Assembly: GCA_003693705.1 (NCBI GenBank)
Contig: RBZT01000514.1
Coordinates: 1-38,937, forward strand
From: Polymyxa betae A26-41
Taxonomy: Eukaryota; Protista; Endomyxa: Phytomyxea
DNA: 38,937 bases
Reading direction: 5' to 3'
Under the pieces are notes generated by a model that was not told the origin of the DNA, ran no database searches, and was given only the letters and a program-made list of their open reading frames with translations. Position 1 is the stretch's first letter; each line of letters starts with the position of its first letter. Of this stretch, positions 1,698-24,600 are shown one piece after another. Position numbers and translations under genes: made by a program.

Positions 1698-2373
1698 TTA
1701 CGGGTTCAAGGCGTTTTTTGATTCGATATCAAACTCCAGTATGTCGCAGTCAAGGTCGAGCTGTTGTGGCCCTGTAACAAGCGCTGATGACACAACCGAC
1801 GCCTGAGTCTTGCGATGCGTCTTCATATGAGTGACCAGATTCGATTTCTGCGAGAACTGTTTTCGACAAAGGCGGCATTCGAACGGCCTGTCGCCCGTGT
1901 GCGTCACCATGTGCGTCTTGAGATGATGTCGCTGGGCGAAACGTTTCTCGCAGATCTCGCAGACGACCGGCTTCTCCCCGGAATGGATACGAATGTGCGT
2001 CTTCAGATTACACAGCTGGCTGAACTGCTTGCGGCAGACTTCGCATTGGTACGGCCTGTCGCCGCTATGGACTCGCGAATGCGACGACAAATGGCTTCGT
2101 TGCGCGAAAGATTTGTTACAGACGTCGCAGAAGAACGGCTTCTCTCCGGTGTGAATACGAATATGCGTTCGAAGCACCGACGGGTACTTGAAGCTACGTT
2201 GGCAGTATTTGCAAACCAGCCCAGAGAACGAGATCAAGTCAGATGATCCCGAAACAGGTGTGAGCAAATCGACGGGAGACGGGACTGCGCCGCCCTCCTA
2301 TTCAAAGTCAGCATAGTCGAAATCCAATGACGAGCTAGATCCTTACCTCTTCATACTTGGTTGCGAAGCACAT
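1698..2373 (-). CDS. C2H2 zinc-finger protein, 5 tandem fingers (paralog of 14356..14937)
   Basis: Five C-x2-C-x12-H-x3-H fingers with TGEKP/SGDRP linkers. Exon 1 2373..2347 (MCFATKYEE), 49-nt GT-AG intron 2346..2298, exon 2 in frame with ORF 1698..2267. Confidence 0.93.
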
Positions 2374-2686
2374 GACAATGGCCAGCAAATACAGGCACCA
2401 ATAAATCAATTACGAAGCCGACCTTCAAATAGAAAAGACACGGTATATCGATGTGCGCGGCACAGTGTCCGTGGGAGAAACCGATCCGAAAGCGGCTATA
2501 CCGTCGCTGAGTCGAATGATAACGATATAGGACTGGGCCTGGGAGGAGCAGCCCCCAGTCACCGTGGAAGAAAACTTTATGCGGCGGAAGCGACGCGACC
2601 TCCTCGCGCGACTTGACAGATCAGACCAGAGCGTTCTAGTTAGTCAAACTTGAACCTTGGTGGTGATTGGTCGAGGCGGTCCTGGG

Positions 2687-3626
2687 ATGAGCTCGGCAAC
2701 GTCGTTGGTCCGTCGCTCGTACGTAACCGCCGCGTTCGTTCGAAATTTCGCTGCGGATCGATCCTGTGACGAGAGGCAGGTTGTTGGTTGACTGTCACAT
2801 AGTGAAAGTTTCTACTCCAAACCGAGCCGAAACTGTTGAAACGCCCAGCGGCCCTACCCGCTTCTTTCAGCGTGTGGTCATACTCACTTTATTGTCGAGC
2901 TACTTACCGTACTTCTCCGAAGTCCAATAGCAATACAGCATCAAATTCGACGACCAGGTATTCAAGATTCACGACTATGGCATCGGGGCAATTCTGTTAT
3001 CGAAGTTGCCCCCTCTTTGCTAAGTCGTTGACATTCTGACGGATCAAGAATGTTTCAGCTGATTTTATCAGAGAATAAACTCAAAAGATTTTTAGACAAG
3101 GTCGAACGCGATTTTTGTTCACGCAAAACGGTCGCACAAATTTAATCGCGGCAGACTCTGGGATTCTTGCAATAGTTCCGCAGCAATCTGGGATGTTATC
3201 GAATCGTTAAAGATTGAGTAACTATCACTTACAGAATTTTCACAGCATTCGCTGACGTTTGACATTCAAAAGCATTGAAAATGAACTGCGCATTTTAGTT
3301 TTTTAGTCAGAAAATGACGAAACCAAATGAGTCGTGATAGAAATTGATGAAACCTTTACCTTTCAGCGGCCTGTCTGACTTTGGCCTTTCTTATCATTTT
3401 CGTTGCTAGTGAATGAGTCAACACAACCGCGAAACACAAACGACCCGGAAAGAGAACAGGATTTTGAAGCTGAAAAAATGAATTTGAATTCGTTAAGCAT
3501 GAATCACAACCACGTATGTACTTCCTCAAATCAAGTCAGTCGTATTGCTAGATTCTTCATCAAACTAGCGGTGTGGAGTCAGAATATAAGGCCATCTTTG
3601 AAGGGCAAATATTTGAATGCCAATGA
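2687..3626 (+). pseudogene. SPO16: SPO16/PTD (C1orf146)-like ERCC1-type meiotic ZZS subunit, apparently disrupted
   Basis: Spliced model (introns 2719-2779, 2877-2930, 3005-3048, 3131-3175, 3218-3272) gives ...RSLLVDCHIV...FQRVQYSIKFDDQVFKIHDYGIGAILLSK...NKLKRFLDK/RSNAIFVHAKRSAAIWDVIESLKIDIENELRILVF*. This is colinear with human SPO16 as recalled ([26 protein letters not shown]...KIEKFINIHQNSFLVL...[23 protein letters not shown]). It needs a frameshift near 3100 and has in-frame stops at 3304 and 3328. The 3' end is uncertain. Confidence 0.6.
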
Positions 3627-3784
3627 GAATGTTTTACATAAATATGTTCCCATTCAAACCTTGCGATCGTATTATGAATACAGACAGAACGGATATGTCG
3701 GTACGATAAATTGGTCTGGAGACGGTTGCTGCACACTTGGCCATTGATGAAATCATTGTGTCAACACGATACAGAAGCAAGCAT

Positions 3785-4015
3785 GAAAGATAAACCCAAG
3801 CTCCAACACACAAGGTGAATGATCGTTATGCAGAAGAAGGGGAAGATTGGGCAATAGCGCCATATAGTATTGACCAGAGGCATGCGGCGTCCCTATCAGG
3901 AAAGATAAACCCCAAGCTCCAACACACAAGGTGAATGATCGTTATGCAGAGGAAGGGGAAGATTGGGCAATAGCGCCATATAGTATTGACCAGAGGCATC
4001 CGGCGTCTCTATCAG
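3785..4015. repeat. Tandem duplication, 2 x about 115 bp
   Basis: 3785-3899 and 3900-4015 (GAAAGATAAACCC...CTATCAG), differing by one indel and a few substitutions. Confidence 0.95.
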
Positions 4016-4047
4016 ATGAAGGTCTTGGGTAACATAGACACTGCTTG

Positions 4048-4107
4048 CTCATGAGGGCATTCCCATCTCATCTCTCCCTCATGAGGACATTCCCATCTCA
4101 TCTCTCC
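4048..4107. repeat. Tandem duplication, 2 x 30 bp
   Basis: CTCATGAGG(G/A)CATTCCCATCTCATCTCTCC twice, ending 4 nt before the SHOC1 ATG. Confidence 0.95.
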
Positions 4108-4111
4108 AGAG

Positions 4112-7100
4112 ATGGTGACGTTTAACTGGTCAGCGCCACTAGGTCGCTCTCTTCGCCAGCGTCAGATTATTGATGTGTTACCGTATCCCAGCATCCAGGA
4201 TTCTATAATCGAATGCCGACATGATCAGTCTTTGGAATTGGAAGAATTTGAGATTGACATATCTTTCATTACTTTCAATGGTGATATTTCACATGTGTTT
4301 ACTTCTATGCAAGAAAAAACATGTGAGGATATAACATTCGAAGATCAAAACATCGAATGTGATGACGAGGACATTTTGATGTTGGATGAGCCAATTCTAA
4401 AGGACGCTTTAGAAAGCTGCAAGGGCTTCGTCGATGCAGGAAATTTCAACTTTGTTGAGCATCTCAAAGAGAATTCTGAGAATGACGGCGACAGCCTGAA
4501 CTTTAAGGATTTGCTTCCAGCTTCCAATCGTACCTTCTTCAACATCGACTTCCATTTAGAAACAAAGCTGGAAATTCAAGATACTGCTGCTGAAATCAGA
4601 ACCTTGCAAGAGCCCGTTTTTCTCGATAAAACGCCGGAAGTTCTGCAAGCGATACCGGGCTTGGAAGAGCAGGAAATCGACTCAATCACATTCAATAATG
4701 ATGCCTCAACATCATTTGCTTTCGCTTTCGGCATTATCGCTGATCAAGAGTCACCTTCAGGCGACTATGAGATTCAAGCACTGATCGACGAAGGTTTAGA
4801 CAATGAGGTTGTTGCAATTGAAGAAGTTATTTTTCCACCATATTTCAGTTCCATTCTCCAAAACCAATGGTTAAATATCGAGCCAGAGATTGATATGATA
4901 GAAACCGGGCGGAGCTTTCCTCAGGCGATCATACTAAGCCCAGCAGATTATCATCGATTACTGAAGCGAATATTCGTCAAGATACAGGTCATTTTCCTTA
5001 ATCGGTTTTCATGCTCTGCAATGTTTCGTATTAATATTTTTACCTGTAGTTCTACAATCCGGCCACTCCTGAACTGCTTGACGTTCCTGATCTCCCAACT
5101 GCTGTACAGCAGTATGTCGGTCCTATCGAACAGTTTCAACTCCATTCTATACCTGCTGCTGGATTTGATCTGAAATCGATTCTCGCCGATCCATACTTCA
5201 CGTCATGTACTGAAGCACAGGTTCTTCAAAGAATCATCCAAGAACTAAAGCAATGCCTGCCGAAGCGTTCGGTGCCTTTTTGTAATCGACCCGAAAGGAT
5301 ATTTGAAGAATTCGAAAACGAATCGAGCGATCGATTCTTTGCGCCTTTACTCCAAGTCGCAGATCATGCCAGTCCTTCTGCTGGCACTTGTCGTAGTCGT
5401 TCTTTGGTATCTCCATGCTCTTTTGCTCAAGTACGTGGCTCTGTACAAATATCGCCGAAACCAGTAAACAATGATCTGTCCATACATTGCCAGTCCAGTC
5501 GTAAAGCAAAGAAACCCAAGCACCACACTCTGGATGATTTCATTGCATTAACCACAATGCCGAAAATCATTGCCGAAGCTCCAGCCATTTCTGCAAGAAT
5601 TGAAGTAAGCTCTTGATAAAGCAAGGTTTCATCGCGTGCTGAAAAACTTGCCCTCAGGACATCAAAATCGGCCGAAGTAATGCGATTTCAGATGCAGTAG
5701 ACCTATTTCGCTATGCTGCCTTACCTTGTACCGAAAACTTGCAAATGGCTAACTATCTTCAGCCAGATGATTCTTTATTCAGAGTGACTGCAGAATGTTC
5801 TAAGAACCTATTCAAGCGGGTTTTGTCTCGACTGCGTCAATTTGATCGGAATGACGTCAAACTGTTCAACGACCTGTGCGATATCGCCCAGAGTGCTCTT
5901 GTCTTCGCTACCTTGAGACGTCTCGTCGATGTATTAATCTTTTCGGGAATCACCCTTTGCCTAAAGCAGCTCCACTTCGAGATGCGAAGAACAGAATTAC
6001 AAACGATATTGAGGTTCCACTTGAACTCCCATTGGACGGGAACGTTTCAAGAGCTATGCTCCAGGTTGGAATTGCTATTCCAAGAAGTTTGTCAAGGAGA
6101 CATCCATGATCATCCGAAGATCGATTTCTTGCTTGAACAAAGAGATCCTGGCTCTATTGTTTTAGTCAATACTAGAGCCCTTGTTCCGATATTGTTAGTT
6201 TCGCTTTCAAGCATAGGTAATATTTACAAGTCTTTGATTCCAGCATCTCATGCTTGCTTCAGATCCGCAGCTAAACATAGTTGCATATGATGAGCATATC
6301 GACGACCTCATGGGAATTGATTTTCTGCTTGCTTATCAGGAAGAAATTTATCGCCATGATAAGTTTCCCTGGTCATCTTTTAGGAAAGTTATTTTCTACG
6401 ATGTAAAAGGTCGGTCTTGTCTCGAAACTTATTGACTCGAGAGTAGGGTGAACCCAAAATTCGGGGAGAATACTTGCAAGAGTTAATCGAAGATGGACGA
6501 ATATCTAGCATAGTGTTACAAGTTGATGAGAAGCAATACGAGTCTTCTAGCTCATCAGAAACTGAAAAGCATTCTGTTAGCTTATCCACAAATCGATACA
6601 TCATTGCTTGTGCAAGCATTACAGAACAGGTATGCTATTCCTATTTTCAGATCATCTTCAAAAAAATTTCGTCGTTGAATAGCGAAGTGCTGCTTGATTT
6701 GGTTAAGTGAAATCGCAGAACCTCGACATTTGTGAAGGCTTGCTTGCGCAAAGACCAGATCTTGAAATCGTTTGGCGCGAAAAGAACATTCCTGACATGT
6801 CATTTATAACAGGCATATCGTCGATCGTGATTTTGACTGCCATCCCTGGAACAGATGAAGCTGAATCGTTTATTTCATCGATTAGCGATCTCTACGTTCA
6901 GTACCAAAACGTCACTCTAATTGTCATTCACGATGCAGATTCCGTTGTTCAACCAGACTTCGTCCAAGTTCAAATGTGGTTCGCTGCAGGTCTAGCAAGT
7001 TCAAGAGTAGGGTTCCTGTGCGAACTTATATTCGTCACTACTCTCGAAGAGATCATCAAAATATTGTGCAATGATGTATCTGATCAAGCGCCGATGTACG

Positions 7101-7557
7101 ACATCGCGCCTACCCCCTCTGAACAGGAAATGTTTCTTTCCTCGTTTCCATCAATCAACCCAGCTGTGGCTTCAGAAATGATGCAACGTGCTCACAGCTT
7201 GACAAGACTGCTTTCCGCTTCATTAACTGAATTGAAGTCGTGGTTCCCAGATCTCAATCCGGTAATATACAGTTCCTTTGCCATTACAATACGCTAATAC
7301 GATTGCAATAGATTTCAATAGAGCTGTTCTACAATCTCAGCCATGCAGAATTCGAGCAACCTCCACTGGCTGTCGTCAGGACCAAGTTGACACCGCCGAA
7401 TTTACCTGCTACTCAAAGTTTTACCAGCGGCGGGTCTAGACGCTCTCCTGAACGTTCCGGATCCGGAAGTAAGCGAAGGAAACCGCCCAGCAATAATCAT
7501 ACGCTGGAGGATTATTGGGGACCCCCTTCGAAGAAATCTTCGGCGGCCCGAACATAA
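4112..7557 (+). CDS. SHOC1: SHOC1/ZIP2-like XPF-domain meiotic crossover protein (about 1033 aa, 7 exons)
   Basis: Exons 4112-4987, 5050-5604, 5658-6216, 6263-6402, 6447-6629, 6719-7261 and 7312-7557 join in frame through GT-AG introns. The C-terminal region has a degenerate XPF fold (IIACAS...LEIVWRE..PD) followed by the SHOC1-type HhH signature EMFLSSFPSINPAVASEMM...SLTRLL...ISIELF. The true 5' end could be further upstream. Confidence 0.8.
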
Positions 7558-7673
7558 TCAAGCATGCAATGCATAGTTATTTATCATCACAGCGTTTTTT
7601 ATCTTGATATACATAAGAGATGGCATCGATCGAATCCTGCAATGATGATATCGGTTTCACAGACGAAAAGACA

Positions 7674-8790
7674 TTAGCTGCTTACCTGTGAGATGCCGTT
7701 ATCTGCTGCGAATTTTTCAACCGGGACTAATCGCATTTGCCCATCTTCATCGTAGCTTGACACGCTCTGCGATGGATCAGCGCCATAGCGTAGCAGTAAG
7801 CTAACAATAGCAAATGAACGCTGTCTCAAGATTGCAATTTGCAGTGGACAATGCCGTTCCTCGTCTAGTTTATTCGGATCACAACCTGCCATGGCAAATA
7901 AGCGACGTTCTGACGATACGATCTAAAAACCATTTTGCAATAGTGATTCTACAATCTGAAGCGATGCGGAAATTGAGATAGCATAATGCAGTGGATCGCG
8001 ACGCTTCACATTTTGAAGCTCGATTCCATGAGTAATTACACATTGTAAAACCTGAGCGTCATCATATTTGATGGCCTCAAATAGCAACTGCTCCAGAATC
8101 GTTCTGGCTTGATCTTCAAGGTCATACAAACGAGCTATCACCATCAAACTCGATTCTTTCGCACTTGGCGATCGTTGAGGCTTGACATTTCGCTGCAATA
8201 GCGCCGATATGTAAGGACGGGAATGAACCATATTTAATGCCAAATCAAGCAAAGAGCCATCTCGGAAAGCCCTGTGCGGTTCTGCTCCAGCACACAGCAG
8301 TCTCTCAACCACACTTGCTGCCCTCCTGTAATGAACCACAACCTGAATCCGGCTCAGTTGTGATTTGCTGTGCTAAAACATTTCGCAACCGCCAAAGGAA
8401 AATTGCCATCAGCATCGGTGTGTTCGAGATCAGCCCCTGTCATCAACATTAAGGCATCTTCATGAAAGCAACAGACAATCACATAACCCGAAATTGGACG
8501 AAATCTAATCCTAATTATTCCACAATAACAATGCTACGTCAAGATAATGGAAAAATCTCAATAGAAAAAAGTCTTAATTCAATTTCAAAAGCACATGCAA
8601 GCGATCCAACCTTCAGCAATCGCACTATCTACAGCATCATCCAATTCAGAAGGCCATATCCCGAAGCACGTTCTCCCATCGCAGACTCGCGATCGATTGC
8701 CCTTCAGTAGGTCCAGTAAACGATAGGATGCGGTGTGCTGCAATCCTTGACGTTGTCGTCGCCGCTGCCGTACGATCTTCACGACTTCGT
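7674..8790 (-). CDS. Ankyrin-repeat protein (multi-exon, 5' end uncertain)
   Basis: GADLEHTDADGNFPLA|VVV...VERLLCAGAEP, DPLHYAISISASLQIVESLLQNG, and CDPNKLDEERHCPLQIAI...IVSLLLRYGADP. Confidence 0.8.
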
Positions 8791-9313: not shown

Positions 9314-10364
9314 ATGGCATCCAAGGACAAAAAGAAGAAAAAAACGGATGGCAATGAAATAGGATATTGAACGTCATTCATTCGATAAACAAAGTGGCTA
9401 GACTAATATGTTTTTACAGTAAATGCTTCATTATCATTCCTGGCCGATTTCTACCACGAGATTGTCAAGAAGCAAGGCGGCGGCCCGAACGATTCGCTCC
9501 CACCTTGGATTGAATCGATCATGCAGCAATCCGACCCGAGCGCCATACAGGTCGGTACAAAGCCCCGCCGTCCTCTTGATTCCCTTCTGAAAGCGATCTT
9601 GGCATCAGGCAACCCTGGACGGCATCCTCGCCGACACCACCATCAAGACGCTTCGAGATTTCATCGCCGATCTGCCGTCCTCGAATCCGGCTGTGCCGTT
9701 ATACATTCGGTCCCTGCTGTTCTGGCGGGCAGTACGGCGCGAATCCCCGTCCTGGCTGGCGCTGCTGACGTGCTGGCCCGAATCGCGAGCCCTGATGAAC
9801 CTCGCTCGTCTGCATCTGTTCGATTGTAATCTGGGACCTGCATCGGTCGCAGTCCTCGCCCCATTTCTGCAACGAGCGCCGGCGCTTCGCGAGCTGAACC
9901 TCGACCATAATTCGGTACGCTTTTGCCCAACATAACTCGAAAGCAGCAACGTCACAATAACGTTGCCTCCAAGGAACTCGCCGACCCAAAAGCATACGCC
10001 GTACTGGTCCCGGCGCTGAGTCAGCTGCGGCACGCTGACCAAGCTCAGCCTGACCTATTGCCAGTTGCCGGAGGGCGCCAGTACGACGTTGGGCGCTCTG
10101 ATCGAGGGTGCCGTCGGCCTCGAGGAGCTTGATCTGGAGGGAAATCGTCTGCAAGACGGCGGTGCCCGCCATCTGGCCGAGGCCATCATCCGGAGCCAAC
10201 CCGACGCCCGTCTCCGCCTCCTCAACCTGTCCGATAACGGGCTGCAGGGCGCCGTACCGGTCCAGCTGGCGCTTCGGACTGCTGCCCAGACACGGCACGT
10301 CTGCATCGCCGTCCACGACGTGTTCCGATTCGATATGGTGGCGAGACCGACCCCAGACACGTGA
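9314..10364 (+). CDS. Ribonuclease-inhibitor-type LRR protein, with an apparent frameshift near 10020
   Basis: LARLHLFDCNLG, LRELNLDHN, LTKLSLTYCQL, LEELDLEGNRLQDGGARHLAEAI, LRLLNLSDNGL. Exons 9314-9350, 9420-9550, 9609-9914, 9974-. The first intron must start with GC. Confidence 0.8.
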
Positions 10365-10387
10365 GTGGGCCAGTACGGCAATGTTTA

Positions 10388-11106
10388 TCAGGCTTCTTGC
10401 GGGTTGGTTTCGAGATTGATGGAATTGCCGAACTTGGCATACAGGACGCCTTTCAGCGAGATCATCTCCTGATCGATCAGGGCGATCTGCGACTCGGTGT
10501 CTTCCGTCTCCGATTGCAGGCGTTCGCGAAGGCGCTCGACATAAGCTGTGGCGTCGTCCTCGGTCGATTCCACGAACACCGACCCGAATTTCAATAGCAG
10601 GCCGTCGTCATCCATCACCATCTCAACAGCAGAGGCGGCATCATTCAGGTTCTCAAGATGCTCCTAGACAAACTTTCAGTATGGCGATACATCTTTCCAC
10701 AAATGAAAGACACTATAATAAGCACAAGCAAAGGAACACTCATGGCTTGAACAAAATCAAAGGAAGACATTGAGAGACTTTCTGAAGAAGCAACGAATTT
10801 GATAAAGGTGACAAATAAGCTCTAATAGAAATAGATAGCTGCAGAGGGAAGGAATCTCTTTACAAACTGATATGTTTTTTTGGAATAAATTAAGAAGCGA
10901 AGTCGATAAACAAAATACTTTCTGCTTTCTCAGCTGATCTCGAAGCTCTTCAATCTTCAGGTTGAGCTGCCCGAACCGATTGATGCGCTTCTGGTCGTCC
11001 CAGGTGACATCCTGATTGGTAGGTTCAGCACCTCCCCTGCCCAGACCCTGTAATCGCCATTATCAGAACACTCATCGCTAGATGTTAACCAGCGTACCGC
11101 TTTCAT
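10388..11106 (-). CDS. PFDN4: Prefoldin subunit 4 (GIM3)
   Basis: DVTWDDQKRINRFGQLN...LENLNDA...LKFGSVFV...LKGVLYAKFGNSINLE. Exons 11106-11098 (9 nt), 11047-10919, 10663-10388. Confidence 0.95.
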
Positions 11107-14355: not shown

Positions 14356-14937
14356 TTAACTTAGGAATGAAGTCGGTGATGGCGGTCGCTGCTGTAAGCA
14401 TGTTTTGACGTCGAGGATAGGTTCGATATCAATGTGATCACGATTTCTATGTAGGCGAATGTGCGTGATCAGATTCGACTTCTGCGAGAACTGCTTTCGA
14501 CAGATGACGCATTCGAATGGACGGTCGCCGGTGTGCGTCATGAGATGGGTCTTAAGATGATGTCGTTGTGAGAACCTCTTGGCGCAGATCTCGCATGCCA
14601 GCGGTCGTTCGCCGGTGTGAACGCGAAGATGTGTCGTCAGATTGCATTGCTGGCTGAACTGTTTCTCGCAGATGCCGCACCGGAACGGGCGGTCGCCATT
14701 GTGAATGCGAATATGGGCGATTAGATGGCTTCGTTGTGTGAACGCTTTGTCACAGAATTCGCAAGCGAAGGGACGTTCCCCTGTGTGAACTCGGGCGTGC
14801 GTCGTCAAGATCGATTTGTACCGGAAGCATTTCCCGCAGATCGGGCAGGCATGGGGCTTCTCGTCGGTCTCCATCATTCCGGCCTGAGACGAATCATAAA
14901 CTGACGTTGTTTTGGGCTTCTCGTCGGTCTCCATCAT
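14356..14937 (-). CDS. C2H2 zinc-finger protein, 5 tandem fingers (paralog of 1698..2373)
   Basis: Five canonical fingers with TGERP/NGDRP linkers. The N-terminus carries a duplicated MMETDEKP. Confidence 0.93.
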   Translation of the reverse strand: MMETDEKPKTTSVYDSSQAGMMETDEKPHACPICGKCFRYKSILTTHARVHTGERPFACEFCDKAFTQRSHLIAHIRIHNGDRPFRCGICEKQFSQQCNLTTHLRVHTGERPLACEICAKRFSQRHHLKTHLMTHTGDRPFECVICRKQFSQKSNLITHIRLHRNRDHIDIEPILDVKTCLQQRPPSPTSFLS

Positions 14938-15794: not shown

Positions 15795-17457
15795 TTACAC
15801 AGATAAGGCTTGATCCACATCCTGATTATCAACAGTTGTTGAAGCAGCAGACGGCTGATTCTCGACCAGCGGCACAGCTGGACTAGCAGCATCACAGCAA
15901 CAATCGACCTGTTTTTGACGTTCATGTATACGCCGATCGAGTTCTAGAAGCTCAGCGTCCAACGAACGCGCACGTCGACGCAGATGCTGCTCGCGCTGCG
16001 CCAGTTCAGCGGTGAGAAGAGTTTGCCATCCGGAATGTGCCACACAATCCGCTCGTCGTTCATTGCAGAACTTGATCATCTCAGGGGTCTTCGGCAACGG
16101 AATCAGCCTTGAATAGTCGATGTCGGCCATGGCGAATGGATAAGCGCAAATCAGGCTTGGCGCCGATCCATCCAGATCGTCCTCATTTTGCCAAACTTCT
16201 TCAAAGCCGTTCAACAAATCCGAAACGAACGATTGGCCCAGATATCTTGCCGCCAGAATCCCGTTTCGTTTTTGCAAACATTCGTCGATATGCTCGCAAT
16301 ACGACGTCGTCGGGATGTCACCCTTGCACGACAAGCACAGCGACGACGACACGATTGGTAGGACGGCGTCGTCTGAGAAATCGTCACTCCTATGACAGAT
16401 CTCGATATCAATCGATGCCAATTGCTCAAAGCGAAGCTCCAATGAGCGACTCCTGGCGTGAGCAGAGGCGCTGCTGATCAGGCCCTGGCAGAGGCGAACG
16501 ATCTGGAGCGAGATCTCCGCATCCGTCCGAATGCGCTTCAGCTTCATGATGATCTGCTGATCGCGATCGTTCGGATCGTCGGCTTCAATATCGTCGAAGT
16601 CGTAGCCGGGGTCGTCGGCTACCATCAGCAGCGATTGCCGGGTATCACCGTCCTCGCTGGTTAGATCGATATCGCTGTCCAAGGCGGGGATGTCTGGGCC
16701 GGTCACCAGCTCGTCAGAGAGACGAGACGCCAAATCCCGGACAACAGCCATTCGGCGCTTGAGCGTATCCGGCGACATCATCGCCGAATACGATTTCGTG
16801 GACGATTGCGGCAACGAGATCATGCCTCGTTTCCGCTTCTTCTTTGGAACGATGCCCTCAGTAGTGCACGTCGGGCCTGGAGCAACATACTAAGATGCAA
16901 GAATACAACAGGCCCATGGAGCTGAACATACAGGTATAGAGCTGCATTCGCATGGCCTGTTGGGTTGTAATTCCAACACAATCGGGATGGAACCATCCAT
17001 CACATCGATCACATCCGATCATGAATTTATCAGCTTGATATGGCTTCCGGCATATGCAGTACAGCTCATCACCATGCACCATCTGACTCGAATCCTATCC
17101 AATATTCATCAAATCAAAGAACAGTTTAAAAATCCAGAGCATCAACAAGTAATGAAAAAAGTGATAAAGTCTGTCACTTACAGCAGTTATGTAGGCTCCT
17201 CGACTAGTATCAGATGTCTCACTGGCGTCATCAGCAATCGCATTAGCAGCAGCTCGAGAATTCGGTGGACGACCTCGTCTTGGCGGACGACCTCGCGGTC
17301 TACCTCGTCCCCTTGAACTTCTCGCCTTTGGTGACGACGTCCCATAATCATTGGACTGCGGCAGGCGTCGTTCCCTTTTCGGGCGAATTGTTCCAGACGC
17401 CAAGATAGGCTCGAAATTGGAATCGACGGGCGGATCGGTCTCTACAGATCCCGACAT
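15795..17457 (-). CDS. CXXC1: COMPASS subunit CFP1/SPP1-like: AT-hook(s) + PHD finger + Set1-interacting C-terminal domain
   Basis: PHD LYCICRKPY..FMIGCDRCDGWFHPDCVGI...YT|CPTC after splicing. C-terminal ICAYP...FCNERRADCVAHSGWQTLLTAEL plus a coiled coil, typical of Cfp1/Spp1. N-terminal RGRGRPRGRPPRRGRPP. Confidence 0.85.
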
Positions 17458-21459: not shown

Positions 21460-21661
21460 GGTTGCAACTGAACACGAGAAGAAGCGGAAATATTTGAAGA
21501 GCAGTTCATCAACGACGAGGGTCCTTCATCGAAGATATCTGCAGTTGCAACTTGCCAAGACAACAGTCAGTCTCAGATGACCGCCGGCGACGATTCTCAT
21601 CATTCATTGTTCTCGAATCAGATTTGCATACCACGAGAGGCATTCTTTATCAGCAAAGACA

Positions 21662-24600
21662 CTATGATGACCAAGTCAGCGCTTTAACATACGAATATGG
21701 TTTAGCAGGGCACACTTCCTCGGCCGCATGATTTCGTAAAACAGATTTCGACATTGCAAAAGACACAGTACTGGATGGTAAAGCGTTGAGAGATGTTGAC
21801 AAAATCGGGTCATCTATCTCCAAAGGATCGCAATGGAGGTTCCAGGAAAGGAATGATTCTGTTGTGGCTCGGTTATCGAGCAAAACCTTCGTCTGACAAA
21901 ATTGCTCTTCATGGCACAAAGCGAAAAGCTTCTTCAGTTCCTCGTGGCTCATGCCGCAAACGTTATTTTCTTTGCCGTCAACGACCCTAAAAATGCACGT
22001 TGAGCGAATTTGTTTACCGGAACTCCCAATCTGACATCGATAGTTCTTGTTTGGTTAGCTGTCGCTGAAAAATCTTTTCGTCTATGCCGCCTGTAGTAAG
22101 AAGCCTATATATAATACATGGACACTGTTGGCCATCTCTCCAAATACGCCCCATTGCCTGTTATGCCATTACTTTAAGTCTCGCATGCGTTGCTGTGAAT
22201 AAAGCTGTAATCATTACCTGCTCATCTGTCGCCGGATTCCAATCGGGATCAAAGAGGATCAGACGCGAAGCTCCAATCAGATTAAGGCCGCATCCGCCAG
22301 CCTAGGCTACGATAAGTTTCGCTTTTGAGATGCCCATGAAGTGAGCACCTTTGCTGACAGCAGAAAAACAGTTTGTGGGCAATCGGGAGAATTGAATTTC
22401 GTAACTAAGGACTGCCTAGTCTGGGCAGGAGTAGATCCGTCCAAACGTAAAGTCTTCCATTGTTTCGATGCACAAAGCTTATCGATAACAGTCAACGTCT
22501 GTGTGAAGTTGCTAACGATAACTGAGCCATGATCAATCTGCTGTCGAAGATGCCACGGTCGCCAAGACCGACCAGTTTTTAGCGAAGGTTGATGCGAATG
22601 CATAGCCGTCAATATTGACTCCAGAACTGCCAATTTACCAGAATGTTGCGAATCGACAACTTCACGATCATAGCAGGTAGGAAACTCATGTTGGTTCTCT
22701 GACTTATAGAAAAGCGAAGGGTCATTTACAAGTTTACGAAGCGCAGTAATATGCATGAGAGCTGCAGCGACATCAGAAGCGTTAATAACGTTAGACACAA
22801 CTTGGGATGTCACGTAAGTCTAATTAACGTGTCAGGGTATAAATGCAAACAAATATCGCCAGTACAGAATATAACTTCACTTGCAAGTCTGACAGCTTGC
22901 AGAATAAGACGCATTCGGTTTTGGGAGGAAGATATTTTGAAAGAACGCTGGAAGTTCTCCGTAAAATAAACGATGACGTCAGTTTCTGAAATCATCAAAG
23001 GCTTATAGACGGCATTTGAGAGGAGATGTAATGATACTTGTAACATATCTGCCCTCTTTTGTCCAAGAGCAGTTTCCTCGTGAGAACAACCAGATCCTGC
23101 TTCTCTCCACGCGACAATAGGCTTGATGAAATTGTTTCGGAAAGATTCTAGGGTCGAGAGAAGCCCTGGGTTGACAAAGGAACACATTGCATAAAGCTCA
23201 TCAAGCTGGTTCTGAATTGGAGTTCCCTAAGAATATTAAACGTTGAATGAGGCAGGATGGATCTAGGCAATACAGTAATAATGAGTCTTCGTTTGGCTCC
23301 AACATCCTCTAAAGCGGCTATCGTTTGATTCCCTTGTGCATTCTTAAGACGATGCCCTTCATCACAAACAAGAAGCACCCCTTTCTGAAGAACTCAGTAA
23401 ACTGTTTGACGTCAGAGCAGGATGACTGTTGGTACTTTTGATGAAGATAGAGCACTTAGATCTTTCGCGAACTTGCGGCACATTTCTGAATGCATCTAAG
23501 TCAACCGACAGCATTGCACTTGACAATCAGAACCATAGCTGATTATGAGAACAGGCCATTTTGAAACTTTGACGAAATCCTGGATAATTTCCTTTTGCAA
23601 TTCAGACTTGAGAGAAGATTGCATCGACAAAATCTGAATGCGATAGTCCCCGACCCATTTCTTGAATTCATTGGCCCAATTGTCAACCAAAGAAGAAGGG
23701 ACAACTACGATGGCCCGAGAAATTACAGGCCCTGATGGTCCATCTTTCAGTAATGTCCAAATAACTGAAATACACTATCAATATTTAGTGGCCAGCATGA
23801 ACCGTTCCGATTCAGCTACCTGTAAGGTCTTTCCCAAACCCATTTCATCAGCAAGAATGGCACCATAATGGTTGGGGTTAGTTACCCCTGTCAAACAATT
23901 GTAAAGGAAGAGCACCCCTTCACGCTGGTGAGGTCTAAGGCGATCTGAGAGAAAAGGACTGCAAAATCAGTTAAGCAATAAATGAGACACAAACTTACCA
24001 CAGTGTGACATATCTGGCATTTGAAGAATGGTCGTTCAAGGGCTTGTAAAGCACTAGAGCGTTTAAAGCGAATGGGTTGTTTCTCGAATTGGTAACAGCC
24101 TTTTGATGAATAGCATTATTAGTAGAGTCTAAGGAACAATAGCTGAGCACAGTACGTTGTTAGCGCTGTTCTGAAAATTTTGTTGATCAGCGTTTCCTTT
24201 GTTTGCCATGATATGTAGTGTCTTCGAAGTTTGCTTCTGGTCATCTCATTAGCTTCAGCAAATATCAGATAAATTTTTTCAGAACCTTTCGAGCTGGAGG
24301 CTGATCGTTACCAGAAACTTGTGAGGCAATAAAAGCGCTGCCAGATTCGTACTCAGAGAAATCCATAATTTTGTCAACTTCGACATCATAACTGCCGCAT
24401 TCGACCTTTAAAACGATAATCAGCATCCGCACAAACAATATCATATTATGTTTTGTACTTCAGAACCCTGTCCAAGTTCACAGACGCCATTCAACAGCTT
24501 GGATGCTAATTGCTTTCCGAGCTCATTGAACAAAGTAAAGGTATTTCCTTTTCGAATTAAAATACCATCGCAGTATGACTTATGCTTTTTGTTAGATCGA

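Follow-up and report, generated by a model that had tools for sequence, protein, structure and literature searches.

Proteins of the SHOC1/Zip2/C9orf84 family are long, carry a C-terminal XPF-like domain followed by a pair of helix-hairpin-helix motifs, possess neither a nuclease motif nor a helicase, and are encoded by single-copy genes; in both Zip2 and SHOC1 the nuclease motif GDXnERKX3D has been lost (PMC5859969). In plasmodiophorids, meiosis is thought to fall in the plasmodia, ahead of resting-spore formation (PMC4471660). Here we analyzed a window of 38,937 nucleotides (nt), an entire contig (C283) of the plasmodiophorid Polymyxa betae, a rhizarian parasite of beet roots, in which a first-pass annotation had placed an SPO16/PTD-like gene directly before a SHOC1/ZIP2-like gene, as the two halves of an XPF-ERCC1-like dimer. 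The SHOC1/ZIP2-like gene, on the plus strand at 4112–7533, is an ordinary, intact and expressed ZMM gene. We tentatively favor, at a little under an even chance, the view that the stretch upstream of it (2687–3305, plus strand) is a decayed remnant of an SPO16-like gene that makes no protein.

All genome-wide searches were run against 1001 contigs comprising 27,085,814 bases, and the published draft is given as 27,085,946 bases in 1,001 contigs with 45.1% GC (PMC6328671). The RNA evidence consists of contigs assembled from four public runs of root-infection RNA (two studies, at most three samples) of unspecified life stage; these contigs are unstranded except through the polarity of their introns, rare forms are dropped from them, and the absence of a transcript is not provable with them.

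The SHOC1/ZIP2-like gene consists of seven exons (4112–4987, 5050–5604, 5658–6216, 6263–6402, 6447–6629, 6719–7261 and 7312–7533). Each of its six GT-AG introns (4988–5049, 5605–5657, 6217–6262, 6403–6446, 6630–6718 and 7262–7311) corresponds to a joint in the RNA contigs, and the joined exons give an uninterrupted frame of 1033 amino acids (aa) from the ATG at 4112, a start deduced from the open frame. The six joints and the open frame bear out the intact seven-exon plus-strand gene of the first-pass annotation. Intron 4 (6403–6446) is removed in the contigs of two runs and kept in those of two others; the form that retains it would stop at about codon 720 (window position 6478), short of the XPF-like domain.

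The identity of this gene is supported by exon 6 (6719–7261), which encodes an XPF/ERCC4-like pseudo-nuclease domain and the start of the helix-hairpin-helix pair. Specifically, exon 6 matches PF17825 (DUF5587, the SHOC1 family) with an E value of 1.8e-7 and 29.3 bits against a cut-off of 25, as well as a piece of a fish SHOC1 whose protein cluster clearly belongs to PF17825. It also shares 32% identity (E 5.7e-24) with P0001, a 1158-aa UniParc protein that is probably a plasmodiophorid transcript product. The predicted fold of exon 6 (predicted local distance difference test score, 67) has archaeal XPF, FANCM-FAAP24, XPF-ERCC1 and Zip2:Spo16 as its top Foldseek matches, with E values of 2e-4 to 1e-2. 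The family profile above its cut-off, the fish match and the XPF-like fold together uphold the assignment to SHOC1/ZIP2 made from the sequence alone. The nuclease motif GDXnERKX3D was looked for in the gene product and is lacking, with no ERK..D present. The gene is single copy in its own genome, where a PF02732 search matched XPF and MUS81 on other contigs and nothing at SHOC1. A sequence search of the PDB with exon 6 was blank, and P0002 was rejected as a bacterial chance match. In length, domain order, lack of nuclease motif and helicase, and copy number, the Polymyxa protein resembles the known family, from which it differs in that its N-terminal 800 aa have no family match.

By analogy with Zip2/SHOC1, which bind SPO16 and ZIP4 and are required for class I crossovers, the product would most likely bind branched recombination intermediates without cutting them, within a ZZS-like complex. 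Its spliced mRNA was found in root-infection RNA, and given the unspecified life stage this does not imply restriction to meiosis. The sexual cycle of the group is poorly known (PMC4471660), and an intact, spliced plasmodiophorid SHOC1 adds molecular support for a meiosis with class I crossovers.

Upstream of SHOC1, the peptide blocks RV/QYS, GIGAIL, KLKRFL, NAIFV, W and NELRIL can be read directly from the plus strand in this order (2871–3297), and GT..AG stretches of 44–61 nt, the local intron size, lie at the gaps between them; to this extent the earlier description is accurate. The corresponding candidate exons are 2687–2718, 2780–2876, 2931–3004, 3049/3059–3130, 3176–3217 and 3273–3305, none of them with RNA support. 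The first-pass annotation had further joined these blocks into one protein by five introns, which the reading frames contradict: KLKRFL (3077–3094) and NAIFV (3105–3119) lie 10 nt apart in differing frames, with a frame break at 3095–3105. Among all models that start from the ATG at 2687, use GT or GC as donor and have introns of 20–150 nt, which we enumerated exhaustively, none holds both blocks in frame. Depending on the acceptor, the five-intron model ends at codon 69 (3058, strong) or at codon 109 (3048, weak), and open models arise only if KLKRFL or NAIFV is dropped. The RNA contig of run X4, the sole run that spans the break, is identical to the genome over 2346–3187 (0 differences, 0 gaps); the frame break is therefore not an assembly slip, and we rejected an assembly error on the strength of this one run. 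Because the upstream model is frameshifted, the claim that the dimer is represented by both its halves does not hold in the form given. SHOC1 does lie downstream on the same strand, its ATG (4112) following the end of the last block (3303) by about 0.8 kb; the reported spacing of about 0.5 kb holds only if a tail reaching to about 3590 is counted. A 120-codon open frame (3385–3747, plus strand) is a possible tail of the remnant; it does not share the frame of the candidate exon before it and has no family match.

In the available RNA, transcription over the upstream locus runs only in the opposite direction. Within 2687–3760, the RNA contigs of the four runs contain no plus-strand splice joint, and three joints with CT..AC ends (3188–3232, 3470–3521 and 3596–3659) are good minus-strand GT-AG introns. 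They belong to a spliced non-coding antisense transcript or long 5' leader (2347–3714, minus strand), and antisense transcription extends across the whole candidate. After splicing, this minus-strand RNA has no ATG frame longer than about 40 codons before the C2H2 zinc-finger gene that begins at 2373, and for want of a long frame a protein-coding gene in this orientation over the candidate was rejected. The RNA carries many upstream ATGs ahead of the zinc-finger gene. In three runs the zinc-finger RNA contig ends at 3048–3079 and a thinner contig then covers 3153–3714, while in X4 alone the zinc-finger and antisense contigs are joined as one. The antisense RNA thus either belongs to the zinc-finger gene as an extended leader or is an independent non-coding RNA that originates in the spacer. 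The suggestion of an operon-like co-regulated pair is not supported by this pattern, as the four runs that give sense splicing of SHOC1 show antisense splicing only at the upstream locus. A long or spliced antisense transcript over a putative meiotic gene recalls RME3-ZIP2 and RME2-IME4 of yeast, and antisense RME3 represses ZIP2 in budding yeast (PMC9680404). Unlike in these systems, the Polymyxa antisense RNA covers the SPO16-like stretch and not SHOC1, and it may be just a neighboring gene's leader; a regulatory role is conjectural.

We favor the reading that the upstream 0.6 kb derives from a small, intron-rich gene of the ERCC1 family that has decayed, by elimination an SPO16/PTD-like one. 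It would carry at least one frame break, the one between KLKRFL and NAIFV, together with weakened splice donors; no sense splicing of it is seen in the stages sampled, where the spliced antisense transcript that heads to the zinc-finger gene covers it. Such a remnant probably makes no protein, and the partner of SHOC1 would be encoded elsewhere or lost. The likeness to SPO16/C1orf146, PTD and Spo16 consists of small size, the strand/helix order of the blocks, short motifs seen by eye and the lack of a visible nuclease motif; the Polymyxa stretch differs from them in that it is not open in one frame, gave no sense mRNA and has no significant match. Exon-wise collinear chain scores against random frames gave P values of 0.047 on the organism's own ERCC1 and 0.073 on its own XPF, these chains place most pieces in the expected order, and the order of the blocks agrees with that of the strands and helices in the ERCC4-like fold. 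Additionally, two blocks can be aligned gaplessly by eye to the Arabidopsis PTD sequence shown in PMC9957857; for the second, this requires crossing the frame break. A branch-point motif precedes four of the six proposed acceptors, against a background of 23%, and the longest open model (263 codons) exceeds those of all 40 shuffled copies of 2687–3760. The ERCC1, XPF, MUS81 and EME1-like genes lie elsewhere (C839, C68, C648 and C931); the upstream stretch is therefore not their orthologue. A recent duplication of SHOC1, ERCC1 or another locus was rejected, as the stretch has no DNA similarity elsewhere in the genome.

Several observations weigh against this reading. The ERCC1 and XPF P values are marginal, since five references were tried and the exons were picked by eye after the fact; against shuffled pieces the same chains reach only 0.07 (ERCC1) and 0.15 (XPF), so that the collinear similarity is suggestive and not significant. 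Summed by hand, the BLOSUM62 scores of the two PTD blocks come to about 17 and 16, close to the level of random pieces. The six proposed donors have a mean percentile of 0.55 among all GTs, compared with 0.92 for verified introns, as scored with a small matrix built from 11 RNA-verified introns, each left out in turn for its own scoring; those at 3005, 3117 and 3131 score low (0.24–0.39), and the proposed acceptors score 0.56 against 0.72 for verified ones. A codon model of low power separated the candidate exons neither from random open frames (P 0.18–0.31) nor from SHOC1 exons. Exon-wise searches of Pfam, the Atlas and the own genome, which are insensitive to exons of 10–40 aa, returned blanks or self matches only and no significant SPO16/PTD match. 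Loss of SPO16 with SHOC1 intact would also be unexpected unless another copy exists. Profile searches of the own genome with PF15162 (SCRE), PF17949 and PF08631 were blank as well; the initial pass of such searches is weak on short diverged exons, and the blanks carry no claim of absence. These blanks do not refute an SPO16 identity, because Spo16 orthologues evade HHsearch even among yeasts (PMC5859969). An identity as SPO16/PTD is thus neither shown nor refuted by the comparisons of sequence.

A rival reading is that no upstream gene exists at all, and that the blocks are chance peptides, taken from the three frames of a divergent promoter or non-coding leader and read with the partner of SHOC1 in mind; we regard this as quite possible. 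An open GT-AG model of at least 120 codons was found in 85% of the 40 shuffles, and therefore an open spliced model alone is no evidence; donors at a random level, blocks that require two frames, blank homology searches and purely antisense splicing all agree with chance. Chance accounts less readily for a block order that fits the fold, the marginal ERCC1/XPF chain scores, the excess of branch-point motifs and a longest open model above every shuffle, and blank searches are in any case what a Spo16 would give. The opposite view, that a working SPO16 is expressed only in sporogenic plasmodia through a shorter splice form (a skip to 3101, or 3117–3183) or from an intact allele, and is otherwise silenced by antisense RNA as in RME3/ZIP2, appears unlikely. 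Open models with five of the six blocks exist, SHOC1 is accompanied by DMC1-like and MER3-like genes, antisense RME3 offers a known precedent in its repression of ZIP2 (PMC9680404), and the contigs lose rare forms from runs of unspecified stage. Yet every open model lacks one of the core helices or strands of the fold, three donors are weak, the frame break is identical in genome and RNA, and these samples already contain spliced SHOC1, so that the pair is not switched together. In the fullest form of this proposal, which we consider quite improbable, a functional SPO16 would lie head to tail before SHOC1 and be expressed in meiosis alone, from an intact allele or as an unusual splice form; at other times it would be silenced by the antisense leader, itself spliced, of the zinc-finger gene, and the pair would be conserved in plasmodiophorids. 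It is very improbable that the remnant belongs to another member of the XPF-ERCC1 family, either FAAP24-like or an old partial duplicate of the SHOC1 domain. Members of the family are hard to distinguish at such distance and the search for FAAP24 (PF17949) found no match in the genome; against this, the chain scores on three SHOC1 domains are at the null level (P 0.27–0.89) and no DNA similarity exists elsewhere.

Should the upstream stretch be a genuine SPO16, the locus would hold a linked SPO16-SHOC1 pair, and its breakage would raise the question of whether SHOC1 acts on its own, together with an SPO16 that has moved elsewhere, or with a different partner. The adjacency rests on an unproven identity of the upstream stretch. 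No report of adjacent SPO16 and SHOC1 genes was found in the literature searched. Searches of homologs and metagenomes with SHOC1, P0001 and the prefoldin gene for the locus of a relative returned only a same-species transcript contig, and P0001 came without a contig. Clusters carrying SCRE exist in oomycetes (database entries); SPO16-like proteins in SAR protists are thus not new to databases, and an SPO16 in a protist would be less surprising for it. At present the SPO16-SHOC1 pair is a lead and not a result; the SHOC1 half of the earlier claim is sound.

The neighboring features are as follows. The C2H2 zinc-finger gene (1698–2373, minus strand; Pfam zf-C2H2) encodes five fingers, has its ATG near 2373 and contains an intron at 2298–2346, where the loose end of an RNA contig at 2346 matches 2268–2297. 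A similar five-finger C2H2 gene lies 12 kb away on the same strand (14356–14937, compared with 1698–2297). The spacer before SHOC1 contains two recent tandem duplications (3785–4107), of 116 nt and 30 nt in two copies each and 96% alike. The 116-nt repeat spans 3785–4015 and the RNA contigs end at 3970–3997; with the contigs broken at the repeats, the start of SHOC1 and any read-through are not readable. On the other side, a convergent ankyrin-repeat gene (7636–8460, minus strand; Pfam Ank), with a minus-strand intron at 7637–7685, has a transcript that meets the 3' end of SHOC1. Farther along, a transcript contig joins a prefoldin-4 gene (minus strand) and an overlapping LRR gene (plus strand) at 9420–10749, with one gap relative to the window at about 9973–10749. 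A weak CpG_bind_C match (CXXC1/Spp1-like, 15795–16823) and an SNF2-type helicase, RAD54-like by eye (about 21600–23500), both lie within 20 kb of SHOC1. The contig end (1–290) holds an AT-rich open frame, followed by about 1.3 kb without a long frame. Elsewhere in the genome, RAD51-like (C882), DMC1-like (C70) and MER3/HFM1-like (C271) genes were seen by translation among the helix-hairpin-helix matches. The genome also has 52 RING-finger matches, several of them in open frames of 92–105 codons on C83, C360, C655, C770 and C920, which are perhaps a repeated element or an expanded family.

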